Below, in pieces: positions 29,466 to 49,259 of a DNA stretch of 64,000 nucleotides. The notes under the pieces were generated by a model that was not told the DNA's origin, ran no database searches, and saw nothing but the letters and a program-made list of their open reading frames with translations. How positions within the stretch are numbered: position 1 is the first letter of the stretch; every line of letters starts with the position of its first letter. The position numbers and the translations under genes are program-made. Source of the DNA: Dicyema japonicum (taxonomy: Eukaryota > Animalia > Dicyemida). Location: NCBI GenBank assembly GCA_011109175.1, contig RDEW01000003.1:682001-746000 (forward strand), written 5' to 3'.

Positions 29466-30281
29466 TTATTAAGGCACTTTCACGAAAGCCATAATGATTA
29501 TAGCCCCGCATGTGCAACACTCAAAGAAACAATATTTATAGTTAGTCTTTTCCATCTTCCTCTGTCGAATGCGAGTGATCTCAATTCGTCCAGGTCGTCT
29601 CCCGTCTTTAGATTTTTTCTCACACGATTTAAGTTTTTGTTTAAGGCTATCGAAAGTGTCGATCTAGATCGTCAGCGGAAGGGTTTTTCGCAACTGTCAA
29701 AGTAATCTTCCATCGCTTTGTTAGCGGGTGCGTCCGGGTTCATTCTTAGTACATGCCCAAATAGCCTCCACCGGGCGTCTATCACATCCTTGCGGATGTA
29801 AGAACACATACACTTGTTGTAGATACCAGTGGTTGATATTCTACGTGGCCACTCCATTTCGAGTAAGTTTCTTAGTTGCCTTCTATGGAACGAATCCAGT
29901 TTCCAATAGTTTCGTTGAAAACTTTCCCCATGTCCCAGCTTATACAGAAGGATCGTTTCACAAACGCGTTGTAAAGCCTGCATCTGATGTCAATTCAAGT
30001 CCGTTGGCCCTTAGCCATCCTTTCTTCAGTTTAGCCCATTGTTGCATTTGCCAGTTTTTCCTCCTTAGTATATCTTCAGCGTCTCCTAGTAGAGAGCCGA
30101 GCTTATTAGTACGTCTCCATCTTTCATGAGTAATATCGTCTTCTCTTTTGATTTCCGTAATTTCAGTTTTGTTAACATTTACGCTGAGAAACCATTTCTC
30201 AAGCTCCGCAGGTGCATTTTCTAGCAGGTGTTGGAGTGCGGTCACGTCCCGTGATACAAAATCCACATCATCGCATAAGAT
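29466..30281 (-). mobile_element. RTE LINE 3' part, starting at the YADD motif
   Basis: YA(D)DVDFVS, LSVNVNKTE, KLGSLLG, RWRLFGHVLRM, ttattatt tail. Confidence 0.85.
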
Positions 30282-31556
30282 CAAATCAAATCAAATCAAA
30301 TTTATTCCAAAGTAAGGAGTTAATTAAAGGGATTTTAATCGTGTCCGCCTTTGCGGCCTGGACACTTCACACGTATCCCATCTCCATTGTAGTCGTCCAT
30401 TTAGTACGCATTGAGAAGCTGGTTACCCAACCTTACTTCGATATCTATTTTTACCGGCCTGACAAGGCTATTCTCTTCCTCGGAGAGGCTTTCATGTAAT
30501 TTCCTCCCCAGAGATATTTTTATCGCCGCTCGCCTTGTTTTCTCCAGGCGAGCGAGAATCCTTTCTCTCGAGGGAGTATAATACCATCCCTCGCATCCGT
30601 ATATCAGTCTTGGGAGAATCACAGTTCGGAAGATATAGAGCATTGTATCGGCGTCCAGCATAAGTTTTCTGGAGCAGAACATCGCTTGAACGGCCTTCTT
30701 CCTCCGCTCCTCGATGTCCTTCCGATACGATCCTCTTCCATCCACTGCAATCCCCAGGTATTTCAGGCTAGAGACTCTAGGTATCCGTAGCGTATACAAC
30801 TCTCTCTGGTGTCGACCCAGCCTGCATATTCGCAAGTAACTGGATTTTTCTGTGGATAGTTTCATCCCTGTCCTATCGCACCATGTCCGAACTCTGTCGA
30901 CAAAAGCCCCGATTCGTCGCTCAGAGATGTATGCCTTCAGAGATGAGTCTAGGATTAAGATGTCATCCGCATATATCATCAGCTTGGTCCTAACGTTTTG
31001 TGGAGAAGGAAAGTCTTCCATAAATATGTTGAATAATAGAGGGCTTTAGAATAGACCCCTGCGGCACTCCCCTTTTAAACAATATATCTTCGGAATATCT
31101 TCCACCAACCACCACGTTTGATATCCTCCCAGTCAACAGGTTCTTCAGCCATAAAAACATTTGTCTTGAAATTTTGATCGAACCAATTGACAGAATAAGG
31201 CCTCGTGCCATACACTGTCGAAAGCCTTAGAAATGTCAAGGCAGACAAGGCTCAACTGGCTCCTCTTCTCAAAAGCATTTGCAATCTCATAGTTTAGAGA
31301 GTGAATGCAATTTCCGCACGATCTCCCTGGCCGAAAACCCCATTGGTAACACTGTAGAAAATTAATCTTTTCTATATATTGATTCAATTTCTTGAAAATA
31401 ATCCGTTCCATAATCTTCGATGTAGAACAGATAAGGCTTATAGGCCTATAACTAAGAGGATCTTTCCTCTACTTTCCAGGTTTAGGGATTATCTTTACAA
31501 TTGAGTGCTTCCATAGTGAAGGGGAATGTCCGAGCTTGAAACTTGCGTTATACATC
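30282..31556 (-). mobile_element. Jockey/I-like LINE (LINE-H) copy 1, 3' half with (ATTTG)n tail
   Basis: QWGFRPGRS, LDISKAFDSVWH, GVPQGSIL, IYADDILI; near-identical to 43354-44650. Confidence 0.9.
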
Positions 31557-31814
31557 ATTATTTAATGATAATGAGATGCTCATCCATGAAGAAACTACTG
31601 AAGTGAAACCACTAAACAAGAATAAAATAGCATAAAAGTTAAGTGAAATTGAATAGAATCTTCTTGAGAACGTTGAAAACGAAAGGATGTCGTCCTTATT
31701 ACATCTATTAGAAGAATTAAAGCAAATATTAGAAATATAAAAAATAAACATGGGAATTGAATTTTATTTTTTATAGAATTTAATAACTCAAAAAAATCAA
31801 TAATGTAGTCAAAT

Positions 31815-31920
31815 TAACACAGCCAACCATCCAAAGTGAACCCCGCCGACAATATCGACGTCGTTGCTTTTCACGATTGCAGCAGAGATCAACTGGAGAA
31901 GCCACCGGGGTCTCACGTGC
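31815..31920 (-). mobile_element. CRE 3' remnant
   Basis: Homologous to 4955-5065. Confidence 0.55.
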
Positions 31921-31929
31921 GAAGATTGG

Positions 31930-32370
31930 AATTCACAAGGCATTCACTCACTCTCAAATATCTTCCCGCCCATCGTTAGAGCTTCTATACAAACATTTTG
32001 TTCTACCTAGCATCGAGTACGCATGTGCTGCATGGATTACCCCTTTATCAATATCAGCACAGAGCAAGCTGGAAGTTTCACAAAATCGATGTCTCAAGAT
32101 TCTATTGAGATCGTCAAAAAAGACGTCCACCTCGTTACTACGGAGAATACTAAACATCTTTCCAATCATGGAATATCTTACGGAACGTCAGTAGAACTTT
32201 TTCAAGATGGCAAAGTCTCTTGACCATTTCCTCGGGCCGCACAGCAAATTATATATGGACGCCAGCCCGAGAGATGAAAAAAAATCTTTTACGCTGTGGA
32301 GATTAATCCAGGACTCCAAAACTAACTGCAGGAAAAAGACTGGTATGGACACCGAGATCACTTAATTAGA
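31930..32370 (+). mobile_element. L2-like LINE C-terminal fragment
   Basis: LLYKHFVLPSIEYACAAW...LEVSQNRCLKIL; 3' gatcacttaattag is shared with other L2-like ends. Confidence 0.65.
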
Positions 32371-32958
32371 CGATACTTTTATCCTTTTCTCGTGATTTCT
32401 GGGTTAATAAAATAAATGAATTAATATTTCGTTCGTTAGGTCATATTTTATTTATAATTTTTAAAAAAAATAGTAGGGAAACTAGCGAGCCGATAAAATA
32501 GTCTCGCGAATCGTTCTGGCTAAGGCAACGAATCGGGATTGCCGCATTACGCAAAAAAAACATTAACAGGAATACCTAATACATTTGACCTGTTTCGCCC
32601 ATTCGTATACATTATTCAGGAAATAAGAAAATGGCAAGATATTTTTTACTTTTATGGATGAAATAAAATTTATGGATTCAATCAATTCCTCCAGGTCAAC
32701 TTCACTACAAACTTTCCCTTTTAGAAAATGTAGCCATAAACACCTCTAGGTTATCCCAATAGCCAAGCCAAAGACATAGCCAATTGGGGCTCGAGTCCAA
32801 AGAGGCCCGGTGATCAAATTATATATTGAAAAAAAACAAGTAAAATGCCATTGAAAGAAATCAAAAATGCGAAATTTAAACAGTTTTGTCCAGTATTTTT
32901 TGGAAATTTATGAAATGTCATGGAACAACCATTTTGGTAAAAAAAGTTTTACCATGTT

Positions 32959-33077
32959 AAATAAAATGCTTGGAAAATATAGAAACTTTTTTTTGTAATT
33001 AAAATAAAATGCTTGGAAATATAGAAACTTTTTTTTTTTGTAATTAAAATAAAATGCTTGGAAAATATAGAAACTTT
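32959..33077. repeat. ~44 bp tandem repeat, about 2.7 copies
   Basis: aaataaaatgcttggaaaatatagaaacttttttttgtaatt repeated. Confidence 0.85.
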
Positions 33078-33559
33078 AATGATAAAAATGTTAAAAATTA
33101 TTTGTGCTTTATTTCAATAAATTTGATTAAAATTAAGTTAGAAACATTACCCGAACTGAATTAATAAGGTCATCGAAGGGGCATCCAGTTCAGTCCTTCA
33201 CACGCGGAATGTTGAGATAAGTATGCGTTCTGACTGAAACTAAGGTACAGTTCAACAAACCAGATATTTTCGTATATAAGAATGAGATATTTCTAATCAA
33301 AGTGGGAACTGTTACATCTCTGAATCGCCTAAAACAAGTGGAAGTAGAAAACTATCACAATTACTACCTCCTTGCAATTGAAATTTCGCTTCTCTTGTCA
33401 AGTAAAGATTATCTCACTGGTTGTGACCTGGGATGAGTTTGAACAGGATCCGTGTGATATCAATTTATATCTTGAAAAAGGACATGCAAATGACATTAAA
33501 AATGTTAGAAATGCGAAGCAACTATTCTGGTAGAAAGAAGTCGTTCCATGCTAATAAAG

Positions 33560-34000
33560 TGGAAAACCTCAAACTGGTAATTATGATGTTTTTGAAAAAT
33601 ATTGGCCAATATAGCCCTACAAAGAATGGAGAGTCCGTAAATTATGGAAAAACTTTTGTGAGGGCAGATCGACCTCGTTTGTGTGTGGAGTCACAAGTTG
33701 AGGTGCCCAGCGGTCCAAAGATTCAAAGTGAGAACGACTATTCGTGAGTTTGACATGTCGAAAATTTTTGCCAATAGACAGAAATTGTTACAAGTTCTGG
33801 AGGACTTCCTTTACAGTTCCACAGTCAGACTGACTAGAAAACTCCTAACGGATACGAATTTGAATGTGAGAATCAGGGGTACCTCCTCAAGGGCACATTC
33901 CAAGGAGATTCATCATCCCTTCGGGACCTGGATACGTTCTTTGAAGGGGAAAAGACATCAATGGAGCACATAAGGGTCTTTTGATTCCGAGGTTTGCATT
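33560..34000 (+). mobile_element. RTE RT remnant
   Basis: FDMSKIFANRQKLLQVLEDFL..STVRLTRKLLTDTNLNVRIRG...QGDS. Confidence 0.6.
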
Positions 34001-34109
34001 GTAGGCCCTCATTGATAGATTTCATCAAGCATGAAAGGTGAGTAGTTGTAGAGTGACCCTTCTTAAAATCACGTTGGAAGCAAGCGTCCGGGAGGTAAGG
34101 TTTAATGAG

Positions 34110-35014
34110 TTTTTCAAGAATTTTTGAAGAGGGTCTTTAAGTGGCCGGTGAATCCTTTGGCCGTCCTGGTTTTAAGATTGGTCGCATATCGGCCAATTTT
34201 CATAGAGTATGGATGGAGTTCCTGCTAATGGAGAGGTTGAAAATTCGTGTGAGGTCCATGGCAGCATAAGGGCCAACCTTCTTGAATACTATAGTAGGGA
34301 TACCATCTGGACTGCTTGAGTAGGACGACTTTTGGTTTTGAATCATCTTCGCCACGACATCCATAGAAAGATTATTTGTGGTTGCGTCGGTGGAAGAAAT
34401 GGAGGACCCCCAATTTCTGATGAGGGATAAACTCACGGAAGAATAAACCTTCATAATCTTGTTTAAAAAGTTCTTGTTCTACAAGTCTTTGCAGGGAAGC
34501 GTCTTCAAAGAGTTTATGAAGCTCAGAAGAGTATTCCACATACTAGTGAGAAAGGACTGTTTGCTTAGGATGAACGTGAGGTTATTACAGTCCATCTCCT
34601 GTTTCACTTCGGCCTTGTTTCTGATCTCTCTCCAAAGCTCGAATCCTCACCCTGGTTTTCCAAGATTGAATTTGTAGGTTTTTTAAGCAATTTCTTTTCT
34701 TCGTAAATGAATCTTGATAAGTGTGATGAGTCCACTACCAGGGCGGTCACGTCGAAAAATGTTGTACCCGAGAAGGCAGGGTGTGTATTTAGGAAGATAG
34801 TCTTGTTTCTTGAAGTAAGCAAATGTCTCCCCTCTTATTCCGTTTATGCTTAGTTGTAAAAAAAAAAAGTTTTTGATAGGCAGGGGTTTGGATTTATATC
34901 TCCTTAGAGATATAAAGGACAATCTTTTTGGATTGGAAGGAATAAGGGATCATTTTTGTTTGTGAAGTAGATTCCACAACTTGTGTCACCAGAAACGTCG
35001 AACCACATGACGCG
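34110..35014 (-). mobile_element. L2-like LINE no. 2, 5' portion (structured leader, 2A-like motif, APE, start of RT), internally deleted
   Basis: LQLSINGIRG..CLLQETRL; SSPDGIPTIVFKKVGP..LTRIFNLS; RPILKPG. Confidence 0.75.
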
Positions 35015-35089
35015 TGCATAAGATCCATAAAATTCTTTAGATAACGGCAGCCACTTTCCAGCATCAAAATCAATATACAGTAAACCCTC

Positions 35090-35518
35090 ATTAATCCGAA
35101 CAAAAAAATTGGATGCCTTGGGATTGTGAAGGTAAAATACTAATTTCAGTGTAGTTAATATTTATGTTTTCATATAATAATCTCTCCATTTTAGCATCAA
35201 TAATTTCCTCGTCAACATTGCAATCTTCACGAAGAGTGACGATTTTGCTCTCGTCGAGCACTTCTGTTTGAGTTATTTTTTCCTCATTGGCAAGTTCTTC
35301 CAGTTCTTTTCGATATTCATTCAAACAGGATCTTGAATGATATCCTCATTAGTAAATGAATGAATACATTTAATTGTCCAGTCTTTTTGTTTATTGTGTC
35401 TTCTTTTTCTTGGTACGTGAGATAACATTATGGTGGCTTTCCGTGAATTCATAAAAATTCTTTTTCCAAATCAAGGGCTTCCATATAATCCAAAATAAGC
35501 TTTTTCCTACAATGATGC
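35090..35518 (-). mobile_element. pogo/Tigger-like transposase, 3' part (probable continuation of 28880-29455)
   Basis: KHHCRKKLILDYMEALD resembles the Tigger K.HYRK.L motif; acidic C-terminal region. Confidence 0.45.
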
Positions 35519-35519
35519 T

Positions 35520-35794
35520 TAAAGTTTTTGATTATTCCCGAATCCATGGTTGAAGATGAATGTGCTTGAGCAAATATTGGATGAATCGTCGGTTAGGATA
35601 ATCAGATTACTACTTGCGAACACAAGACTATCTGTGAGGACAGAAGGAACAACTTCCCGCAGTTTCAAAACAACGATTGGGACACCCCAGGGTGATTCCC
35701 TCTCCCCTTTACTATTCACCATATACCTTGAATCTGCACTCCGCGACCTCCGTAAATGCTATATAGAGACATAGAAGAGACATCTTATGCGGAT
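35520..35794 (+). mobile_element. RTE LINE 5' part, ending at the YAD motif
   Basis: VLEQILDESSVRIIRLLL...GTPQGDSLSPLLFTIYLE, ending atcttatgcggat. Confidence 0.8.
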
Positions 35795-38429
35795 TCCTTT
35801 TCCTTTTAAAAAAAAAATTCAGAATACAAGCGGATGGTTATTTCAAGAAAGACGAAAGTTTCAACAACGAAAATTGGAAACTCCTCTCGTCCTCCGGGGG
35901 CTACTACGGCTGAGTCATTCACTTTGAGAACAAGACGCCGCACAAGGCAGAACTTTCTAAACCTGCCAATGAACCAACGAAATACGACTCTTCAGATATG
36001 AATAAACCATCAAACGAACCAAATCCCACAGAAAACTTGTCCTTGCTGATAACAGTGAATTCCGCCACCAGTGCAATAAAGATTGCGAACACACTATACC
36101 TCTATGACCAATACGGATGCATGAAGATGAGCCACAGAGGATCGGGCTCCTTCCGTCTGGACTTCCGAGGCAACTCACACATGGCCACCTACATGGAGGC
36201 CATAAATGAGACCTGTCCCTTTGGTCTGGACAACCACCACTTTAGGGCAATCTCAACCAAACCATCTGAGATTGTCCTGAGGAACCTTCCGTTCTGGGTG
36301 AGGGAGGACGACCTGTTGGACTACCTACAGGAGATGGCTCCCTCAACTACGAAAGTAACCCGAATGTACAAAGGATCGCTGCCCATGCCAATGGCGAAGG
36401 CCACGATTAAGAGTAGACCGGAAGCCACATCGTTAATACGTTGTGGTTTCTACATTGGAGTGAACAAAATATCCTGTGAATGGAAGAGAAGAGGACCGCC
36501 GATCTGCTATAACTGTCAGCAGATAGGTCACTTTTCATACCAGTGCACAGGAAAACAAAGATGTCTACGTTGCGCGGGAGAACATGATATCTCCAAATGT
36601 ACTATGGATATGGATTCTAAACGGAAATGCATCAATTGTGGGTCTGCAAAACATGGGGCAAGGTATGAAGGATGCCCTGTGCTTGTGGAGACCAGGCGAA
36701 AGCTCATTCCCTAAATCCAAAAAGCAGATATGAAATCTATGAACGTCATAGACGACAAGGTTGAGACACTAACACGAAAAAGAATTATTGGTCCAAGTGT
36801 TAACAAGCCCTCTTCAGCTAATCTACCGAAGAAATCGGTTTGGCAAACCAAAGAAGAGATACCAGGAAGAATCAAAGAAGAACTATATGAAATTATTACA
36901 AGACTGAGAGAACTTAGTGTTACTTTGGGAGTGGATTTACGGGAAATGGTGGACCTGGCCATGGAGAGCCCGGGCCACCAAAAAGAAATCTGAAAAGAAT
37001 CCTAAAGTTAGTGCTGGTGAATGCCCGCTCCTTGGTGAAAAGGCATGATGAACTAGCACTACTTATGAGGACTGCCAAGGCAGATGTCTTGGTAGTCAAC
37101 GAGACGAAGATTCGAGAAGGAAGGCATTATATTCTGGAAGGATATGACTCAGTGGACATTCCATGGAAAGATGGAGCAGTTGCTGGAACAGGAACCTCAA
37201 TCTTCTTTCATAAACTATTGCAAACTCGAAACGACTGCATTATATCGGCCGACGATTCGGAATTCGTGTCTGTCGACGTGCAATGTGGTGGAACGTGGAT
37301 AACCGTGGGAGGGCTATATTCTAAGGACTTGGCCCGGTCCTCTGTGAAAATTGTCGAGTTCTTCGAAAGAAACCCAATGTCGATCCTGGTGGAGATTGAA
37401 CGCCAAGAACAGGACCTATGGATGTTATGGAAACAACAGGGACGGTCAACTACTAGCAGATTTGGTCGGGGAAATTGGAGTCGAAGTCTTAACGACCGAA
37501 GAACCTAACCATTTCTCATACTACGGGGGTGATATGCTGGGATTGGCCTTAGTATCTCCACAACTACTAGACCATGTAACAGGCCAAGGTTACTCTGGGA
37601 TATAGGGAGTGACCATATCCCTATGGAGATGACTATAAATCTGGAACCGGATATTATTGAAGACATTTTTCTGTATTATGATACCTCGTCGGTAGACTGG
37701 GAACATTATCGTCATTATTTATCGAAGAGTATGCTAATGAAGATTAATTATTCCTTTTCTACACATAATGACTTGGATGTTTTCAACCAAGATTTATCCA
37801 ATACTATTATGATGTATCTGCGATTATATGCAACCAAGGTTTACTCAAAAATCCTTCCGAAAACGAATCAGTCCTGCCCTCCTTCTATTCGGAGTCTTAT
37901 TCGCGAGAGGAATACTCTGAAGCGAAACACAGACGATGTGTGGACATGTGGGACAGGATAACTTTGAAAAATAATATCGATGCTATCCAAAAAGTTATAC
38001 AAAGAGCCTGGAAGTTGTATTCCGAAAACCAAGTTAGGAAAGCAGCCTCGAAAGTGCACTGAAAGAATCCTTGCTTTTGGAAATTGTACTCCAGACTGAC
38101 CAACAAAAATTTGAGAGCAAAGAACATTGTACTGGCGGATCAAGATGGAAGAACAATTCCCCTGGAAAGAGTACCGTCAGTATTCAGGAAACAATTAGAA
38201 AACATACAGGGAGTAGACCCAGTCAGTATTATATCTGAAAAATTCTCAGAAGATATATCTAGTTCTATGGATTACTCCATAGACGATCTGAATAGTATGG
38301 TAGAGGAAATCACCTTGGCAGAAGTCAAGACTGCTATACGGGAGTGCAAAAACAAGGCTCCTGGATTAGATAGCATTCCGATGACTATGTTTAAAGAAGG
38401 ATCCGATGAATTTCTATCTGTTCTACAAA
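35795..38429 (+). mobile_element. LINE-H copy 1, 5' half: gag-like ORF1 with three zinc knuckles and ORF2 APE
   Basis: CYNCQQIGHFSYQC, CLRCAGEHDISKC, CINCGSAKHGARYEGC; LVNARSL, VNETK, GSDHIP, KAPGLD. Confidence 0.9.
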
Positions 38430-39865
38430 CAGTCTTGACTTCTGCCAAAGTGATTTCCTCTACCATACTATTCAGATCGTCTACGGAGTAATCCATAGAG
38501 CTAGATATATCTTCTGAGAATTTTTCAGATATAATACTGACTGGGTCTACTCCCTGTATGTTTCTAATTGTTTCCTGAATACTGACGGTACTCTGTCCAG
38601 GGGAATTGTTCTTCCATCTTGATCCGCCAGTGCAATGTTCTTTGCTCTCAAATTTTTGTTGGTCAGTCTGGAGTACAATTTCCAGAAGCAAGGATTCTTC
38701 CGGTGCACTTTCGAGGCTGCTTTCCTAACTTGGTTTTCGGAATACAACTTCCAGGCTCTTTGTATAACTTTTTGGATAGCATCGATATTATTTTCAAAGT
38801 TATCCTGTCCCACATGTCCACACATCGTCTGTGTTTCGCCTTCAGAGTATTCCTCTCCGAATAAGACCCCGAATAGAGGGAGGGCAGGACTGATTCGTTT
38901 TCGGAAGGATTTTTGAGTAAATCTTCTTTGCATATAATCGCAGATACATCGTAATAGTATTGGATAACTCTTGGTTGAAAGAATCCAACTCATTATGTGT
39001 AGAAAAGGAATAATTAATCTTCTTAACATACTCTTCGATAAATAAATGACGATAATGTTCCCAGTCTACCGACAGGTATCATAATACAGAAAAATGTCTT
39101 CAATAATATCCGGTTCAAGATTTATGGTCATCTCCATAGGGATATGGTCACTCCCTATATCCCAGAGTAACCTTGGCCTGTTTACATGGTCTAGTAGTTG
39201 TGGAGATACTAAGGCCAATCCCAGCATATCACCCCCGTAGTATGAGAAGTGATTAGGTTCTTCGGTCGTTAAGACTTCGACTCCAATTTCCCCGACCAAA
39301 TCTGCTAGTAGTTGACCGTCCCTGTTGTTTCCATAGCATCCATAGGTCCTGTTCTTGGCGTTCAAATCTCCCACAAGGATCGACATTGGGTTTCTTTCGA
39401 AGAACTCGACAATTTTCACAGAGGACCGGGCCAAGTCCTTAGAATATAGCCCTCCCACGGTTATCCACGTTCCACCACATTGCACGTCGACAGACACGAA
39501 TTCCGAATCATCGGCCGATATAATGCAGCCGTTTCGAGTTTGCAATAGTTTATGAAAGAAGATTGAGGTTCCTGTTCCAGCAACTGCTCCAACTTTCCAT
39601 GGAATGTCCACTGAGTCATATCCTTCCAGAATATAATGCCTTCCTTCTCGAATCTTCGTCTCGTTGACTACCAAGACATCTGCCTTGGCAGTCCTCATAA
39701 GTAGTGCTAGTTCATCATGCCTTTTCACCAAGGAGCGGGCATTCACCAGCACTAACTTTAGGGTTCTTTTCAGATTTCTTTTTGGTGGCCCGGGCTCTCC
39801 ATGGCCAGGTCCACCATTTCCCGTAAATCCACTCCCATAGTAACACTAAGTTCTCTCAATCTTGT
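38430..39865 (-). mobile_element. LINE-H copy 2, inverted partial copy fused to the H2A promoter
   Basis: Reverse complement of the ORF1 end to ORF2 APE/linker region; joins aaactttagaaag (histone promoter) at 39866. Confidence 0.85.
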
Positions 39866-39967
39866 AAACTTTAGAAAGTATTGATTTTCTTATGCTAATT
39901 CTAAAAGTTTTTTCCGGAAGCACAATTTATAAACATAAGTACGAAAAAATTCAAAATTTTCAATAAA

Positions 39968-40330
39968 ATGTCTACTCGCGGTAAAGGTGGAAAAGTACGT
40001 ACAAAAGCGAAAAGCAAATCAGTTAGAGCAGGCTTGCAATTTCCAGTTGGTCGAATTCATAGATGCTTGAGAAGTGAGACCAGAATGCGAGTTGCAGTTG
40101 GTGCTGCTATCTATGTTGGAGCTGTAATGGAGTATCTATGTGCTGAAGTGCTGGAACTTTGTGGTAATACTGCACTCAAGGCTGCAAAGCGAAGGATCAA
40201 ACCTTGTCACCTGTCTGTCGCAATCAATGCCGATGACGAATTAAAAGAACTTACCCAAAATGCAATAATCTCTTGTGGAAGATACATCTGTCGCAAAAGT
40301 GCTGAACCCGCAAAACCTGCATCCACTTAA
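39968..40330 (+). CDS. H2A: Histone H2A, divergent, 120 aa
   Basis: [42 protein letters not shown]. Confidence 0.9.
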   Translation: MSTRGKGGKVRTKAKSKSVRAGLQFPVGRIHRCLRSETRMRVAVGAAIYVGAVMEYLCAEVLELCGNTALKAAKRRIKPCHLSVAINADDELKELTQNAIISCGRYICRKSAEPAKPAST

Positions 40331-41584
40331 CAATTTTATTAAATAAACCTTTACTTTAATTGACTCTTATCACTATAGTACTTGCTAGCAGAAATCTAAT
40401 TGATCCCTAAGTAATAAGACATCTGCCTTTATTTTGTCAAGATATCTATCGGAAAATTACTCCAAAGGAGTAAAACCCTATTGAAAAAATTAAACTTAAT
40501 TACTTACAAAAATTATCTTGCAAAAAGTTACATTATTACTAACCAACTGTAACCCTAGCTGACAAGTCTAGAACTATCTTGGAATGGAATTGCAATTGGA
40601 TAATCAAAAAACTAAATTAATTTAGTTAAAGGATAACAAGACTTACATAAACAAGAATAGTAGACAAATTTAATTAGACAAATCAATTTCTTCTCCAATG
40701 TATTTATAATTTCGTAGTTTAGTGAGTGGATACAATCTCCACATGATCTTCCCGGACGGAATCCAAATTGATTAGGTCGTAGAAAGTTGCTCCCCTCTAT
40801 ATACCGATTCAGTCTCTTAAATACAATAATCAGTCAATTACAAAGTTATTTTGAAAAAAGTTACATTATTACTAACCAACTGTAAGCCTAGCTGACTAAG
40901 TCAATATCTAGAACTATCTTAGAATGTAGCATTTAGGTAATCAAAAAAATAAATTAATTTAGTTAAAGGTTAACAAGGCTTACATAAACAAGAATAATAG
41001 ACAAATTTAATTTATAAAAACTAAAAAATAATCAATTATCAAATCTCCGCCCACGTGCGTCCAATTTTTAATCTGATTTCATATTTTAACGCGCAAAAGC
41101 AAGACGCGTTGAATGAACTTGGTTTGAGATCAATCAGCCGCAAAAACCTGGATTTTTGACCCCAATTTTTCGACAGCGATTAATTTAATTTTTATATTAA
41201 AATCAAATTGAAATAGTTTTTTTGTTTTTTAAACAGTGTCAAAATTAAAAATTTGTCACATTAAAAGAAAATGATATAGTTTTTTTTGTTTTTTAAACAG
41301 TGTCAAAATTAAAAATTTGTCTTATTTTTGTACTTGAGATTTATTTGGTTAGTTTGTTACATTGAAGTTGGGTTTTATAGGCTAAAGGTATTTTTAGCTA
41401 GTTGATAGAAACTGCGTATGATTAGAAATTCCCGTGAATTAACAATTTAAAACGACATTGCGTCTCAAAAACATTATCAATTAGGCTATAAGGATTGGAT
41501 TATCTTACTTTTTCCTAAATTTTGTCGGGATTAGGTTAATTTAAAAAAAAGAGACAAATTATATTTATTTGATTTATCGAAAAG

Positions 41585-41995
41585 TTATGTTTTTTCACCA
41601 CGAATTCTCCTTGCTAGGTGCATATCCTGTGGCATTATTGTTACTCGTTTTCCATGTATTGCACACAAATTACTATCCTCAAAAATCCCGACCAAATAAG
41701 TCTCTGCAGCCTCCTGAAGAGCAACAATGGCCGATGATTGGAAACGTAAATCTGTCTTCATAAATTGTGCTGCTTCTCTAACAACCCTTTGGAACGGTGT
41801 CTTTCGCAATAGAAGGTCAGTACTCTTTTGATATCTTCTGATCTCCCTCATTGCCACGACACCAGGACGAAAGCGATGTGGTTTCTTTACACCACCCAAT
41901 TGAGAAACTGACTTGCGTGCAGATTTAGCAGAAAGCTGTTTCCTTGGAACTTTTGCTCCAGTTGATTTTCTAGCAGTTTGTTTTGTTCGTGCCAT
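41585..41995 (-). CDS. H3: Histone H3, divergent, 136 aa
   Basis: [49 protein letters not shown]. Confidence 0.95.
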
Positions 41996-42363: not shown

Positions 42364-42672
42364 TCATCCACCAAATCCATATATTGTTCTCCCTTGTCTT
42401 TTCAAGGCATAGACCACATCCATAGCAATCACAGTTTTTCTTTTAGCGTGTTCACAATAGGAAATGCAATCTCTTATAGTTCTCTCAATAAAGATCCTGA
42501 GGACACATCTTGTCTCCTCATAAATTTTGCCTGAGATCCTTCTCACACCTCCTCTACGACACAGTCTCCTAATTGCAGGCTTTGTGATCCCCTGAATGTT
42601 ATCGATCAGGATCTTTTTGAATCGCTTTGCACCTGACTTTCCTCCTTTTCCACCTTTACCACGTCCAGACAT
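42364..42672 (-). CDS. H4: Histone H4, divergent, 102 aa
   Basis: [56 protein letters not shown]. Confidence 0.95.
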
Positions 42673-42965
42673 TGCTTTGCGCTCCAAATTTGGCGTTTAT
42701 AAATTGACGACGCAAAAATTTTTCGCCGAAGCACAAATCGATAATATTAAAAGTTTTTCACGGAAGCACAAATCGATATTAAAGTGAAAATTGGAAAACA
42801 CACTAAAACGGACTTTTTAAATAGCGTTAAAATTAATAAAAAACGTTCTTATTGCGTTAAAATTAATAAAAAACATTCTTTTGTTAAGATTATGACACGT
42901 GGGCTATTTTTATGTAAGGAAAAAAATGTTAGAAAACAAGTTTTCTTTATTATATCAAGTAAAAA

Positions 42966-43333
42966 TCACTTAGTATTGGTATATTTGGTGACCGCCTTTG
43001 CCCCTTCGGTAATAGCATGCTTTGCTAATTCTCCAGGCAAAATCAAGCGTACTGCTGTTTGAATTTCTCTCGATGTGATAGTAGCTTTGCTATTATGCTG
43101 ACTAGATTGCAAGCTTCGTTCTTGATTTTTTCGTAAATGTCAAAAGTAAAGCTGTCCATAGCCATCATAGCTTTCTTTGACATCCCCAAATCAGTGTGGA
43201 CAGATTTCAAAATCCTCAGAATGTACAAATGATAGTTTTGGGATCGCTTTTTCTTTTTTCGTAAGGCACGTGTGGTGCTGCTAACTTTAACTGCCGCCCG
43301 TTTAGATCCTTTAGTACTCACTTTTTGAACCAT
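42966..43333 (-). CDS. H2B: Histone H2B with one apparent 1-nt deletion near 43110
   Basis: [23 protein letters not shown]; the shifted frame resumes [35 protein letters not shown]. Confidence 0.85.
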
Positions 43334-43353
43334 AGTTCTGAGAATCGAAAATT

Positions 43354-46300
43354 CAATCAAATCAAATCAAATCAAATTTATTCCAAAGTAAGTAAGGAGT
43401 CAATTAAAGGGATTTTTAACGTGTCCGCTTTGCGGCCTGGACACTTCCACATGTATGCCCATCTCCCATTGTAGTCGTCCATTTAGTACGTATTGAGAAG
43501 CTGGTTGCCCAACCTTGCTTCGATATCTATTTTAAACGGGCCTGACAAGGCTATTCTCTTCCTCTGCGAGAGGCTTTCATGTAATTTCCTCCCGCAAGAG
43601 ATATTTTTATCGCCGCTCGCCTTGTTTCTCCAGGCGAGCGAGAATCCTTTCTCTCGAGGGAGTATAATACCATCCCTCGCATCCATAATATCAGTCTTGG
43701 GAGAATCACAGTTTGGAAGATATAGAGCATTGTATCGGCGTCCAGCATAAGTTTTTCTGGAGCAGAACATCGCTTGAACGGCCTTCTTTCTCCGCTCCTC
43801 GATGTCCTTCCGGTACGATCCTCTCCATCCACTGCAATCCCAGGTATTTCAGGCTAGAGACCTCGGTATCCGTAGCGTATACATCTCTCTCTGGTGTCGA
43901 TCCAGCCTGCATATTCGCAAGTAACTGGATTTTTCTGTGGATAGTTTCATCCCTCTCCTATCGCACCATGTCCGAACTCTGTCGACAAAAAGCCCCGATT
44001 CGTCGCTCAGAGATGTAGGCCTTCAGAGATGAGTCTAGGATTAAGATGTCATCCGCATAAAATCATCAGCTTGGTCCTAACGTTTTGTGGAGAAGGAAAA
44101 TCTTCCATAAATACGTTGAATAATAGAGGGCTTAGAATAGATCCCTGCGGCACTCCCCTTTTTAAACAATATATCTTCGGAATATCTTCCACCAACCACC
44201 ACGTTTGATATTCTCGCCAGTCAACAGGTTCTTCAGGCCATAAGGAACATTTGCTTTGATATTTTGATCGAACCAGTTGACAGAATAGGGCCTCGTGCCA
44301 TACACTGTCGAAAGCCTTAGATATGTCAAGGCAGACAAGGCTCAACTTGGCTCCTCTTCTCAAAAGCATTTGCAATCTCATAATTTAGAGAGTAAATGCA
44401 ATTACCAGACACGATCTCCTGGCGCGAAAACCCCATTGGTAACACTGTAGAAAAATTACTCTTTTTCTATGTATTGATTCAATTTTCTTGAAAATAATCC
44501 GTTCCATAATCTTCGATGTAGAACAGATAAGGCTTATAGGCCTATAACTAAGAGGATCTTTCCTCGACTTTCCCAGGTTTAGGGATCATCTTTACAATTG
44601 ATGCTTCCATAGTGAAGGGGAATGTCCGAGCTTGAAACTGCGTTATACATCTTTTGTAGAACAGACAGAAATTCATCGGATCCTTCTTTAAACATAGTCA
44701 TCGGAATGCTATCAAACCAGGAGCCTTGTTTTTGCACTCCGTATAGCAGTCTTGACTTCTGCCAATGTGATTACCTCTACCATACTATTCAGATCGTTTA
44801 TGGAGTAAACCATAGACTAGATATATCTTCTAAGAATTTTTCAGATATAATACTAACTGGGTCTACTCCCTGTATGTTTTCTAATTGTTTCCTGAATTCT
44901 GAAGGTACTCTTTCCAGGGGAATTGTTCTTGCATCTTTATCCGCCAGTACAATGTTCTTTGCTCTCAAATTTTTGTTGGTCAGTCTGGAGTCAATTTCCA
45001 AATGCAAGGATTTTTCCAGTGCACTTTCGAGGCTGCTTTCCTAACTTGGTTTTCGGAATACAACTTCAAGGCTCTCTGTAGAACTTTTTGTATAGCATCG
45101 ATATTATTTTTCAAAGTTATCCTGTCCCACATGTCCACACATCGTCTGTGCTTCGCCTTCAGAGTATTCCTCTCGCGAATAAGACTCCGAATAGAGGGAG
45201 GGCAGGACTGATTCGTTTTCGGAAGGATTTTTGAGTAAATCTTCTTTGCATATAATCGCAGATACATCGTAATAGTATTGGATAGATCTTGGTTGAAAGA
45301 ATCCAACTCATTATGTGTAGAAAAGGAATAATTAATCTTCATTAACATACTCTTCGATAAATAATGACGATAATGTTCCCAGTCTACCGACGAGGTATCA
45401 TAATACAGAAAAATGTCTTCAATAATATCCGGTTCAAGATTTATGGTCATCTCCATAGGGATATGGTCACTCCCTATATCCCAGAGTAACCTTGGCCTGT
45501 TTACATGGTCTAGTAGTTGTGGAGATACTAAGGCCAATCCCAGCATATCACCCCCGTAGTATGAGAAGTGGTTAGGTTCTTCGGTCGTTAAGACTTCGAC
45601 TCCAATTTCCCCGACCAGATCTGCTAGTAGTTGACCGTCCCTGTTGTTTCCATAGCATCCATAGGTCCTGTTCTTGGCGTTCAAATCTCCCACAAGGATC
45701 GACATTGGGTTTCTTTCGAAGAACTCGACAATTTTCACAGAGGACCGGGCCAAGTCCTTAGAATATAGCCCTCCCACGGTTATCCACGTTCCACCACATT
45801 GCACGTCGACAGACACGAATTCCGAATCGTCGGCCGATATAATGCAGTCGTTTCGAGTTTGCAATAGTTTATGAAAGAAGATTGAGGTTCCTGTTCCAGC
45901 AACTGCTCCATCTTTCCATGGAATGTCCACTGAGTCATATCCTTCCAGAATATAATGCCTTCCTTCTCGAATCTTCGTCTCGTTGACTACCAAGACATCT
46001 GCCTTGGCAGTCCTCATAAGTAGTGCTAGTTCATCATGCCTTTTCACCAAGGAGCGGGCATTCACCAGCACTAACTTTAGGGTTCTTTTCAGATTTCTTT
46101 TTGGTGGCCCGGGCTCTCCATGGCCAGGTCCACCATTTCCCGTAAATCCACTCCCATAGTAACACTGAGTTCTCTCAATCTTGTGATAATTTCATACAGT
46201 TCTTCTTTGATTTTTCCTGGTATTTTTCCTCTGGTTTGCCATGCTGGTTTGTTTGGTAGATTATCTGCAGACGGCTTGTTAACACTTGGACCAACAGTTC

Positions 46301-47219
46301 TTTTTCGTGGTAGCGTCTCAACCTTGTTCGCCTATGTCGTTCATAGGTTTCACATCTGCTTTTTGGATTTGAGGAATGAGCTTTCGCCTGGCCTCCACAA
46401 GCACAGGGCATCCTTCATATCTCGCACCGTGTTTGGCAGACCCACAATTGATACATTTCCGTTCAGAATCCAAATTTATAGAACATTTGGAGATATCGTG
46501 TTCTCCCGCGCAACGTAGACATCTTTGCTTTCCTGTGCACTGGTATGAGAAGTGACCTATATGCTGACATTTATAACAGATCGGCGGTCCTCTTCTCTTC
46601 CACTCGCAGGATATTTTGTTCACTCCAATATAGAAACCACAACGTATTAACGATGTGGCTTCTGGTCTACTCTTAATCGTGGCCATCGCCATTGGCATGG
46701 GCCGCGATCCTTTGGACATTCGGGTCACTTTCGTAGTTGAGGGAGCCATTTCCTGTAGGTAGTCCAAGAGGTCGTCCTCCCTCACCCAGAACGGAAGGTT
46801 CCTCAGGACAATCTCAGATGGTTTGGCTGAGATTGCCCTAAAGTGGTGGTTGTCCAGACCAAAGGGACAGGTCTCATTTATGGCCTCCATGTAGGTGGCC
46901 ATGTGTGAGTTGTCTCGGAAGTCCAGACGGAAGGAGCCCGGTCCTCTGTGGCTCATCCTCATGCATCCGTGTTGGTCATAGAGGTATAGTGTGTTCGCAA
47001 TCCTTATTGCACTGGTGGCGGAATTCACTGTTATCAGCACGGACAAGTTTTCTGTGGGATTTGGTTCGTTTGATGGTTTCGTTGGTTCATTGGCAGGTTT
47101 AGGAGGTTCTGCCTTTTGCGGCGTCTTGTTTTCCAGAGCAAATGACTGAGCAGTAGTAGCCCCCGGGGGACGAGAGGAGTTTGCATTTTTCGTTGAAACT
47201 TTTGCTTTTCTTGAAACAC
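43354..47219 (-). mobile_element. LINE-H copy 3, near full-length Jockey/I-like LINE (ORF1 gag, ORF2 APE-RT, (ATTTG)n tail)
   Basis: ORF1 46318-47046 and upstream; ORF2 from 46071 through YADD to ~43480; flanked by cgaaaatt and cgaaaaaaaaaatt. Confidence 0.9.
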
Positions 47220-47230
47220 CGAAAAAAAAA

Positions 47231-47370
47231 ATTTGAATTTTTTCGTACTTATGTTTTCAAATTGTGCTTCCAGAATAAACTTTAGAAAGTATTGATTTTT
47301 CTTATGCTAATTCTAAAAGTTTTTCCGAAGCACAATTTAAAACATAAGTACGAAAAAATTGAAAATTTTC
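47231..47370. promoter_or_regulatory. Divergent H2B/H2A promoter with ~40 bp inverted arms
   Basis: 47231-47271 is the reverse complement of ~47325-47370 (GAAGCACAATTT.AAACATAAGTACGAAAAAATT). Confidence 0.65.
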
Positions 47371-47376
47371 AATAAA

Positions 47377-47740
47377 ATGTCTACTCGCGGTAAAGGTGGA
47401 AAAGTACGTACAAAAGCGAAAAGCAAATCAGTTAGAGCAGGCTTGCAATTTCCAGTTGGTCGAATTCATAGATGCTTGAGAAGTGAGACCAGAATGCGAG
47501 TTGCAGTTGGTGCTTGCCATCTACGTTGGAGCTGTAATGGAGTATCTATGTGCTGAAGTGCTGGAACTTTGTGGTAATACTGCACTCAAGGCTGCAAAGC
47601 GAAGGATCAAACCTTGTCACCTGTCTGTCGCAATCAATGCCGATGACGAATTAAAAGAACTTACCCAAAATGCAATAATCTCTTGCGGAAGATACATCTG
47701 TCGCAAAAGTGCTGAGCCCGCAAAACCAGCATCCACTTAA
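47377..47740 (+). CDS. H2A: Histone H2A copy 2, with an apparent +1 indel near 47515
   Basis: Nearly identical to 39968-40330; ggtgcttgcc versus ggtgctgct. Confidence 0.8.
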
Positions 47741-48114: not shown

Positions 48115-48915
48115 TATTTGAGCGTCCATACGGATGCAGTGGTATCGGTCCATACGGATGCAGTGGTATCCTGGAAAATGGGGGGTTTAACCACTCCCAT
48201 CTTCGGCACCTCTAGCCGAACTAGTGTAGTTAGTCCTCCGAATACCTTTTCTTTCTTCTTTTCTTTCGGCACGTGCGCTCTGGATTGATTCGAGCCTGCA
48301 AAATGCTTTTTAGGGCACTTTGCGGTTTCTGGACCCGAATCATGCACGTTCTGCGGTTTGGCAAAACCGCAGACTTCTCTTTCTCCCTACTGTAGTCCAG
48401 CCTACAGTCATCGGGAGATGGTCCTCTTGTCGCACTTCGTTCGAGGGCAGGCACAGCCTGTTGGACCGCTGGCTGTGTGACGGATTCAGCCCTGCCCTCG
48501 GTTCTCGGTCTTGATTCTTTCAAGAGGCTGAGTCTTGCTCTCAACATCCATCCTCCTCGTCCCAGGCACAGCTTGTTCAACGCCGCTAGCTGTGGCTGGG
48601 ATGTTTTCCTCGGTCCTTGGATCCATTACAGGAGGCTGAGTCTTGCTCTCAACCTCCATCCTCCTCGGTGCAGGCACAGCTTGATCAACCGCTTGCTGTG
48701 TGGGGATGTCCGCTGCAGTGTGGAAAGCAGCCCTGCCATCGATCCCCATGTTGACTCTGAACGACAGAAGGATCGAGTCGCGAACGACCCTCCTGAGCTT
48801 CTCGATTCCTCGGACTCCTATAAAATACAGTCCAATAGGGGCTTATTTGTGAAGAGTCCTTGTACAACGTGGGCCGCTGTGTCGCAGACCACACGTGAGA
48901 TGTCCTCATAATCCT
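48115..48915 (-). mobile_element. LINE ORF1-like segment with three internal peptide repeats, joined to an APE piece
   Basis: LRRVVRDSILLSFRVNMGIDGRAAFHT is conserved with 55575-55810; QAVP..RRM.VESKTQP repeats; 48115-48185 matches APE at 57760-57815. Confidence 0.55.
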
Positions 48916-49045
48916 CAAGATTTCGTAAGGCACGTGTTGTGCTACTAACTTTAACTGCAGCTCTTTTAGATCCTTTTGTGCTAACTTTTTGAACCATAGT
49001 ATAAATCCGTTTAGATCCTTTTGTGCTAACTTTTTGAACCATAGT
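48915..49045 (-). pseudogene. H2B: H2B 5' fragment with a duplicated start
   Basis: [40 protein letters not shown], with synonymous differences from the 43333 copy. Confidence 0.8.
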
Positions 49046-49259
49046 TTTTTAAACAGTGTCAAAATTAAAAATTTGTCACATTAAAAGAAAATGATATAGT
49101 TTTTTGTTTTTTTAACAGTGTCAAAATTGTCTTATTTTTGTACTTAAGATTTATTTGGTTACTTTGTTAAATTGCAGTTGGGTTTTATAGGCTAAATACA
49201 CGCCAAATAAAATTCTAATGTTTTGAAAGGTTCGCCATATTGTAAAATAATTTTTTAAA

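Follow-up and report, generated by a model that had tools for sequence, protein, structure and literature searches.

Recurrent insertion of a LINE retrotransposon at one position of the H2A and H2B leaders in Dicyema japonicum

We analyzed a 64,000-nt stretch of the Dicyema japonicum genome (hereafter, the window; contig C223:682001-746000 of the 67.5-Mb, 377-scaffold assembly), in which a long interspersed nuclear element (LINE) lies between the histone genes H2B and H2A. The family of the LINE copies in the window was named LINE-H, and the element between H2B and H2A was termed copy 3. Copy 3 is inserted in the H2B leader, is flanked by a target-site duplication (TSD), and is absent from the equivalent, empty sites of paralogous histone units. 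On a second contig, C343, the same base of the mirror-image leader was hit on the H2A side, and each insertion runs in the sense of the gene downstream. These observations are probably best explained by insertion of LINE-H with a preference for one position in the H2A/H2B leader, followed by duplication of an occupied unit. The assembly was merged from Platanus (Illumina) and Falcon (PacBio RS II) contigs (PMC6736024); thus, single-base indels within repeats should be read cautiously. Unit occupancy beyond the loci inspected letter by letter was taken from coordinates alone.

In a normal unit, a bidirectional promoter of ~170 bp separates H2B from H2A, and its two arms form an inverted self-match with 81% identity. 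Each arm contains a GAAGCACAA box, a ACATAAGTACG element, and a leader with AAAATTTTC. The 5′ end of copy 3 is flush with the H2B arm of this promoter, and its tail ends at 43354, 19 nt from the H2B ATG. Read in the element sense, the flanks are ...AATT(T)10CG, the element, and then AATTTTCG ATTCTCAGAACT ATG. In six paralogous C343 units, the empty site is the uninterrupted ...CAAAATTTTCG..., where the two BLAST pieces of the histone unit overlap by 6 nt. The empty sites and this overlap indicate that the TSD is 8 bp long and that the T-run was expanded in its upstream copy. An earlier, sequence-only reading of the window had described a LINE between H2B and H2A in the H2B sense, starting inside open reading frame 1 (ORF1) with no 5′ untranslated region (UTR). 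It had further taken the flanks for a TSD and proposed that removal of the element gives an H2B leader mirroring the H2A leader. Each of these points was borne out: the first by ORF and Pfam matches, the second by comparison with full-length relatives, the third by the empty units, and the last by the C343 alignment. Its placement of the tail just upstream of the H2B ATG also holds, with 19 nt lying between the two.

C343 carries a tandem array of at least seven units of this histone type. As observed, the unit at C343:121972-125627 contains a LINE-H copy (122351-125142; 96.5% identity) between the promoter and H2A, running in the H2A sense. The junction of its tail with the leader, ...GATTTG/AATTTTCAATAAAATG (the slash marks the junction), lies 13 nt before the H2A ATG; read through to the start codon, the sequence is ...GATTTG/AATTTTCAATAAA-ATG. 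This junction, unique in the genome, corresponds in mirror image to the one on the H2B side, ...GATTG/AATTTTCG, and the nucleotide hit in the mirrored leader motif is AA/AATTTTC. The copy shows a 5′ truncation at nt 1066, a loss of ~39 bp from the H2A arm, and a GGA microhomology at the 5′ junction. The H2B side of the unit is empty. An origin by inversion of the window arrangement was rejected because the promoter has its normal orientation; neither inversion nor unequal exchange could have turned the window insertion into the H2A-side copy.

A further trace was observed in the H2B leader at C343:149078, where 13 nt of LINE-H tail lie between two ~20-nt leader copies. This locus may be a third insertion with extreme truncation, or it may have arisen by deletion from an ancestor in common with the window. 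The two loci have the same 17-nt tail/leader junction, which was found nowhere else in the genome. A match on contig C2 that seemingly joined a LINE-H tail to an H2B head was dropped, as the exact junction was not found there. When junctions were compared across units, as the earlier reading had proposed, the junction G/AATTTTC was found in the H2B leader (window, C343:149078) and the H2A leader (C343:122351), on the same mirror nucleotide and always in the sense of the downstream gene.

We estimated the chance of such recurrence from ~23 independent 3′ ends, ~16 leader sites of ~20 nt, and 2 x 67.5 Mb of sequence. By this estimate of our own, ~5e-5 hits would be expected, against two (or three) observed. 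Hits so far beyond chance argue for preferential targeting and not for one amplified accident. Alternatively, LINE-H may have no target preference, and a single chance insertion may have multiplied as the histone unit was duplicated. The copy-3-like part of copy 2B (described below), which is the copy 3 insertion duplicated with its unit, is as expected in that case, and so is the location of most family copies elsewhere. However, the H2A-side copy on C343 lies on the other arm of a normally oriented promoter, differs in tail length and in its 5′ truncation, and is accompanied by a target deletion; its 3′ junction falls on the mirror-equivalent nucleotide, for which the expectation is the ~5e-5 events given above. 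We therefore give scarcely any weight to chance followed by amplification. Of the two possibilities left by the sequence-only reading, a histone-targeting LINE is thus retained in the form of a preference, and an amplified insertion applies to the 2B part only. Its proviso that only the duplicated unit of the window might be occupied failed, given the independent H2A-side copy.

Genome-wide, 55 occurrences of the 12-mer CAAAATTTTCGA that spans the site were counted, only 2 of them in histone units. Thus, a short motif was rejected as the sole cause of targeting, and recognition must draw on more than such a motif. One explanation invokes no sequence targeting at all: nucleosome-free histone promoters would be accessible and the array would be a safe haven, so that several LINE families accumulate alike. 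A distant LINE family (23-40% amino-acid identity) is indeed also found at the 5′ ends of histone genes, both in the window and in the same array, and the other characterized LINE-H target sites share no consensus. Nevertheless, if accessibility alone were at work, insertions should be spread across the ~170 bp between the genes and should face either way, whereas two to three LINE-H events share both nucleotide and sense; given a hit in the 170-bp spacer, this agreement would arise by chance with a probability estimated at ~1e-4. Accessibility by itself is, therefore, unlikely. Another explanation is homing by pairing of RNA with its target, such that read-through RNA of a resident copy ends in the leader and anneals to nicked leaders or to the mirror arm, yielding the same junction. 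Downstream read-through sequence positions R1-type elements. The 17-nt junction shared by the window and C343:149078 would fit homing, as would the resemblance of the native leader (AAAATTTTCGATTTCAGA) to the 3′ end of the element (AAATTTGATTTGA). However, this resemblance is short and was noticed post hoc, and no read-through copies with a 3′-transduced leader were found outside histone units. Homing in this form seems very unlikely.

Other observations weigh against a preference of LINE-H for histone leaders or against a role of the promoter in its spread. In the genome census, 25 LINE-H 3′ ends (at least 81% identity) were obtained, ~23 of them independent; in 2 cases a histone ATG is no more than 20 nt away, and ~21 of the ~23 lie in non-histone flanks, showing that the family is not histone-specific. 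No histone sequence was found in the flanks of the other near-full copies, L002-L008, L010, L011, L013, L015-L018, L021, and L029, indicating that LINE-H is dispersed. The LINE-H tails at L002-L004, L006, and L017 are joined to GGACGAAAAAGT or GGACGATTGC straight after the tail of a sister LINE (...AAATTTGTCTTGTCT), and this GGACGA... site is apparently a second recurrent LINE-H target. The insertions in the window and at C343:149078 may go back to a single event, the latter having been shortened by deletion; the number of independent events would then be only two. Retention bias in an insertion-tolerant tandem array could also inflate the apparent preference. As for copy 3 itself, at least six frame changes were counted in the open-frame map; the lack of a start codon and several frame breaks, to which assembly indels possibly contribute, mark it as defective. 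The assembly contains five other heads, which represent three further insertions; as none of them shares the 5′ junction of copy 3, nothing indicates that this copy ever served as a source. With 2 of ~23 copies at the leader, the strict site-specificity of R1, R2, and Tx1 types, in which the great majority of copies lie at one target, was not observed, in agreement with the view of the sequence-only reading that targeting is not exclusive. Taken together, the insertion positions support a strong preference, and not an obligation, for the histone leader position.

Under this preference, the endonuclease of LINE-H would nick the bottom strand of the H2B leader where AA meets AATTTTCG, at a distance of 2-3 nt from the start of the transcribed part, and the (GATTT)n-tailed RNA would be reverse-transcribed from the nick. 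A cut of the second strand 8 bp away would create the duplication, and joining of the complementary DNA slightly short of its 5′ end would cost the element its UTR and the AT of its start codon. As a result, copy 3 stands in sense directly behind the H2B core promoter, leaving H2B 3.9 kb downstream without a promoter. The position preferred by LINE-H belongs to a leader motif common, in mirror image, to H2A and H2B, which would explain why each insertion is oriented like the gene that follows it. The additional determinant may be a longer recognition sequence, a promoter that is open and transcribed, or base pairing between the leader and read-through 3′ RNA. Duplication and rearrangement of the occupied unit would later have produced copy 2B.

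The position of the insertion relative to the transcript start can be judged from C343, where a member of another LINE family has taken along an H2B leader. This leader begins at CAAAATTTT, adjoining foreign sequence, and reads CAAAATTTTTGATTTAGACT-ATG. This carried leader indicates that RNA started at the H2B promoter includes the AAAATTTT motif and the LINE-H insertion point. The H2B transcript would accordingly start at CAAAATTTT, placing the LINE-H nick 2-3 nt inside the leader, and the 5′ end of copy 3 is located downstream of this putative start, in sense. By geometry, the H2B arm should now fire into copy 3; a takeover of the histone promoter, as predicted from geometry only, is plausible and unproven. 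No H2B leader was found at the other LINE-H 5′ ends among the six heads in the assembly. A present-day benefit for copy 3 is not supported, since the copy is coding-dead.

Copy 3 is 3.9 kb long, and its parts are listed in Table 1. Its reverse transcriptase (RT) was recognized by the Pfam domain RVT_1 (E = 1.8e-14, on the ORF at 44049-44381), and its endonuclease by Exo_endo_phos_2 (E = 1.4e-9; 38.3 bits, cut-off 27.4). In ORF1, three Cys-His knuckles were readable in the translation, although the best Pfam zf-CCHC stretch scored 18.6 bits, just below the 20.8 cut-off. The hallmarks of a LINE were thereby found: an RT domain, an N-terminal endonuclease of the apurinic/apyrimidinic (APE) type in ORF2, and a nucleic-acid-binding ORF1. 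The 641-amino-acid RT fragment of a relative, L003, matched RVT_1 LINE clusters in the protein atlas; among the clusters shown, the nearest with a descriptive name was 'RNA-directed DNA polymerase from transposon BS', which we take to be a Jockey-group label. Copy 3 shows 96-97% DNA identity to L002-L004 from end to end, and these three are duplicates of one insertion. Duplications of 8, 10, 12, 13, and 16 bp were observed at five LINE-H insertions, terminal repeats were absent, and many copies were 5′-truncated with the (GATTT)n end in common. Copy 3 thus arose by genuine retrotransposition, and the LINE from which it stems is APE-type and Jockey/CR1-like.

Table 1. Positions of LINE-H copies, their flanks, and histone features (window coordinates unless a locus is named)
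Feature	Position	Strand	Basis
LINE-H copy 3	43354-47219	minus (H2B sense)	Pfam, tblastn with ORFs of relatives, open-frame map
Copy 3, ORF1 region with three CCHC knuckles	about 46300-47219	minus	
Copy 3, APE endonuclease	about 44990-46160	minus	
Copy 3, reverse transcriptase	about 43540-44990	minus	
Copy 3, AATAAA and (GATTT)n tail	43354-43385	minus	
TSD, 3′ copy (AATTTTCG in element sense), part of H2B leader	43346-43353	minus	flanks and C343 empty sites
TSD, 5′ copy, T-run expanded from 4 to 10	47220-47233	minus	flanks and C343 empty sites
Copy 1, 3′ 1.3 kb of the insertion of copy 2A; duplication 30272-30281	30272-31556 (LINE-H match 30280-31556)	minus	self-comparison, flanks
Copy 2A, 5′ 2.6 kb of a separate LINE-H insertion	35782-38429	plus	self-comparison, flanks
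Copy 2A, parts	5′ duplication 35782-35791; 42-nt leader; ATG 35834; body (LINE-H match 35841-38429) to breakpoint		
Copy 2B, equivalent to 44747-46184	38430-39865	minus	self-comparison, three-way alignment
Full-length LINE-H leaders	L002:5371-5412; window 35792-35833; L011:1430-1500		
H2A arm of promoter and intact H2A (39968-40330), neighboring unit	39865-40330	plus	translations, Pfam, unit alignment
H3	41585-41995	minus	same histone unit as H4/H2B (translation/Pfam)
H4	42364-42687	minus	same histone unit as H3/H2B (translation/Pfam)
H2B, separated from its own promoter by copy 3	42965-43334 (ATG 43334-43332)	minus	translations, alignment
Bidirectional H2A/H2B promoter, two-arm inverted repeat	47234-47376	no strand	self-match and C343 alignment
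GAAGCACAA boxes of the occupied promoter	47262-47270; 47327-47335	minus; plus	
GAAGCACAA in histone spacers	39917, 42123, 42728, 42763, 47262 (-), 47327		
H2A of the occupied unit	47377-47740	plus	translation, comparison with neighboring copy

The 5′ end of copy 3 starts with GGTGTTTCAAG, and full-length relatives have ATGGTTGTTTCAAG behind a leader of 37-46 nt. Compared with L002-L004, copy 2A, and L011, copy 3 is missing its 5′ UTR together with the first two bases, 'AT', of the ATGGTT start; upstream in the ORF1 frame, a stop follows after 13 codons with no ATG between. LINE-H 5′ heads are rare, only six being present in the assembly, and an uninterrupted ORF2 was found in none of the nine LINE-H copies inspected. 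The full-length heads carry unrelated leaders before the same ATGGTT, each leader being unique in the genome, and no common 5′ UTR was found among the four full-length heads counted as independent. In contrast, the sister subfamilies (L008, L026, and L030) have a conserved TTCTACAG-repeat UTR before ATGGTT. We considered whether the full-length leaders are pieces of the H2B promoter or leader; the best z was 3.3 over 27 comparisons, which is not significant. A captured H2B head at the ORF1 N-terminus (MVVSRKAKVSTK...) was also rejected, because local alignment with H2B tails gave no excess over composition-preserving shuffles (z 0.6-1.8) and the same ATGGTT stands behind the native TTCTACAG-repeat UTR in the sisters.

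The window contains further LINE-H copies at lower coordinates than copy 3. The breakpoints of copies 1 and 2A adjoin, at positions equivalent to 44651 and 44653 of copy 3, and the element composed of both is flanked by the 10-bp duplication ATCTTATGCG (30272-30281 and 35782-35791). These junctions indicate that copies 1 and 2A are one independent insertion, which was later split by an inversion of about 31557-38429. Copy 2B is composed of two parts. Its first ~430 nt agree with copy 2A at 18 sites where copy 3 differs, and over the other ~1 kb there are 20 sites at which it matches copy 3 and not copy 2A. Within this ~1-kb stretch, copy 2B shows eight substitutions relative to copy 3 (~0.8%), compared with the 3-6% that separate family members. 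Copy 2B then passes without a gap into the promoter at position 47276, which is followed by an intact H2A; relative to the arrangement at copy 3, 46185-47275 is deleted. By these agreements, the copy-3-like part of 2B with its H2A promoter fragment and copy 3 go back to a single insertion that was duplicated along with the unit. The claim of the sequence-only reading that copy 2 occupies the same position upstream of the previous H2A thus applies to the right-hand ~1 kb of 2B; the rest of copy 2 belongs, with copy 1, to the separate element. Its placement of copy 1 inside an RTE was not confirmed, as no Pfam match and no RT similarity were found in the flanks. Positions 36896-39867 of the window form a near-palindrome, in which 2A and 2B are an inverted repeat with 97.2% identity and a 96-nt loop. 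This palindrome reflects either a fold-back or template-switch rearrangement or a chimeric long-read join, that is, a local mis-assembly.

A second group of LINEs is associated with the histone genes. At 48150-49060 (minus strand) of the window, a member of a different LINE family has an ORF that opens with two H2B heads in a row, at 49046-49007 and 49000-48921; the ORF1-like body behind them is unrelated. On C343, this histone-headed family fuses to or interrupts H4 after 106 nt in four units, and a copy with an H2A head is located on C46 (L043). ORF1 and ORF2 of the histone-headed LINEs share 23-40% amino-acid identity with LINE-H. Similar to LINE-H, these elements lie in the same genome and histone array, in sense, just downstream of histone promoters. 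They carry an in-frame head of the first 20-35 codons of H2B, H4, or H2A to new sites, whereas LINE-H sits in the untranslated leader, has no histone coding head, and keeps its native ATGGTT start. By these features, LINE-H is a second, related lineage with a different insertion mode. We tentatively put forward, with more doubt than confidence, that LINE-H and the histone-headed LINEs form a histone-gene guild that nicks a defined position at the transcription start of replication-type histone genes and uses their S-phase promoter for its own transcription. Such a guild would be an RNA polymerase II (Pol II) counterpart of R2 in ribosomal DNA (rDNA), and the hypervariable H2B leaders would be scars of insertion and loss.

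Target-specific elements without long terminal repeats (non-LTR elements) include R1 and R2 in 28S rDNA, Keno, Mutsu, and Dewa of the Tx1 group in small nuclear RNA (snRNA), 5S, and transfer RNA (tRNA) genes, and NeSL, CRE, and SLACS in spliced-leader genes. LINE-H resembles these types in its recurrent hits on one nucleotide of a tandem, highly transcribed host gene, in its fixed orientation to the host transcript, such that host transcription can read in, and in the occupied and empty units that stand side by side in the array. However, ~10% of LINE-H copies are at the target compared with almost all R elements, the target is the leader of a Pol II histone gene, and the APE-type endonuclease has no evident strict recognition sequence. 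LINE-H further resembles LINEs of the Jockey/CR1/I group (Drosophila jockey, BS, and I factor) in an ORF1 with three CCHC knuckles, an APE domain followed by RT in ORF2, frequent 5′ truncation, and duplications of variable length, but ends in a (GATTT)n microsatellite tail instead of poly(A). Site-preferring LINEs are known from rDNA, snRNA, tRNA, and spliced-leader genes, telomeres, and microsatellites. A full-text search of incomplete coverage returned no report of LINEs that target histone genes, which is absence of evidence only. As for LINEs, the D. japonicum genome paper mentions only abundant ORF2 copies (PMC6736024).

If LINE-H does prefer this position, a LINE in sense at the first transcribed bases of a histone gene would have its expression tied to DNA replication, a time when new chromatin is open and target DNA is nicked and repaired. 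Histone copies would meanwhile be inactivated one by one inside a redundant array. The system would thereby offer a testable case of niche choice by a parasite of a multigene family, in an animal of ~30 cells whose genome is half repeats. For annotation, such insertions would explain the unequal lengths of histone units and several orphaned or broken-looking copies of H2A, H2B, and H4.

The GAAGCACAA motif occurs seven times in the window against 0.49 expected, with six of the seven in histone spacers, which makes it a candidate histone-promoter box. The ACATAAGTACG element is located 39 nt before the ATG; in the more divergent histone cluster on C20 (71-80% identity), a clear TATA box is found 35-41 nt before the ATG. 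This agreement in position is a further, indirect argument that LINE-H inserted close to the transcription start. The H2B leaders on C343 vary by indels exactly between AAAATTTTCG and the ATG, whereas the H2A leaders are invariant. In the H2B leaders at L032-L036 and L055, about 13 to 44 nt follow AAAATTTTCG, with many short duplications. The hypervariability of the H2B leaders may reflect scars of repeated insertion and loss.

The H2B gene of the window has a 1-nt deletion compared with intact C343 copies, and the H2A gene of the occupied unit has a 1-nt insertion compared with the intact neighboring H2A. Indels of 1 nt break four of the seven aligned H2B copies (six C343 units and the window; the broken ones being the window, L033, L036, and L055), and several C343 histone copies are frameshifted though no LINE-H is nearby. 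These indels reflect either widespread pseudogenization of the array or unpolished long-read errors in repeats. As they are scattered over the H2B copies of a merged assembly, we did not rely on frameshifts as proof of pseudogenes.

The spacer between H2A and H3 contains a 55-codon RT fragment, both in the window (40675-40827, minus strand) and in every C343 unit (e.g., L035:1027-1179). It is 60-64% identical to the RT of LINE-H and is what is left of an old LINE that was in place before the array was amplified. In addition, a lone copy of a promoter arm was observed at C312:11004-11055 (L052), with no histone gene adjoining.

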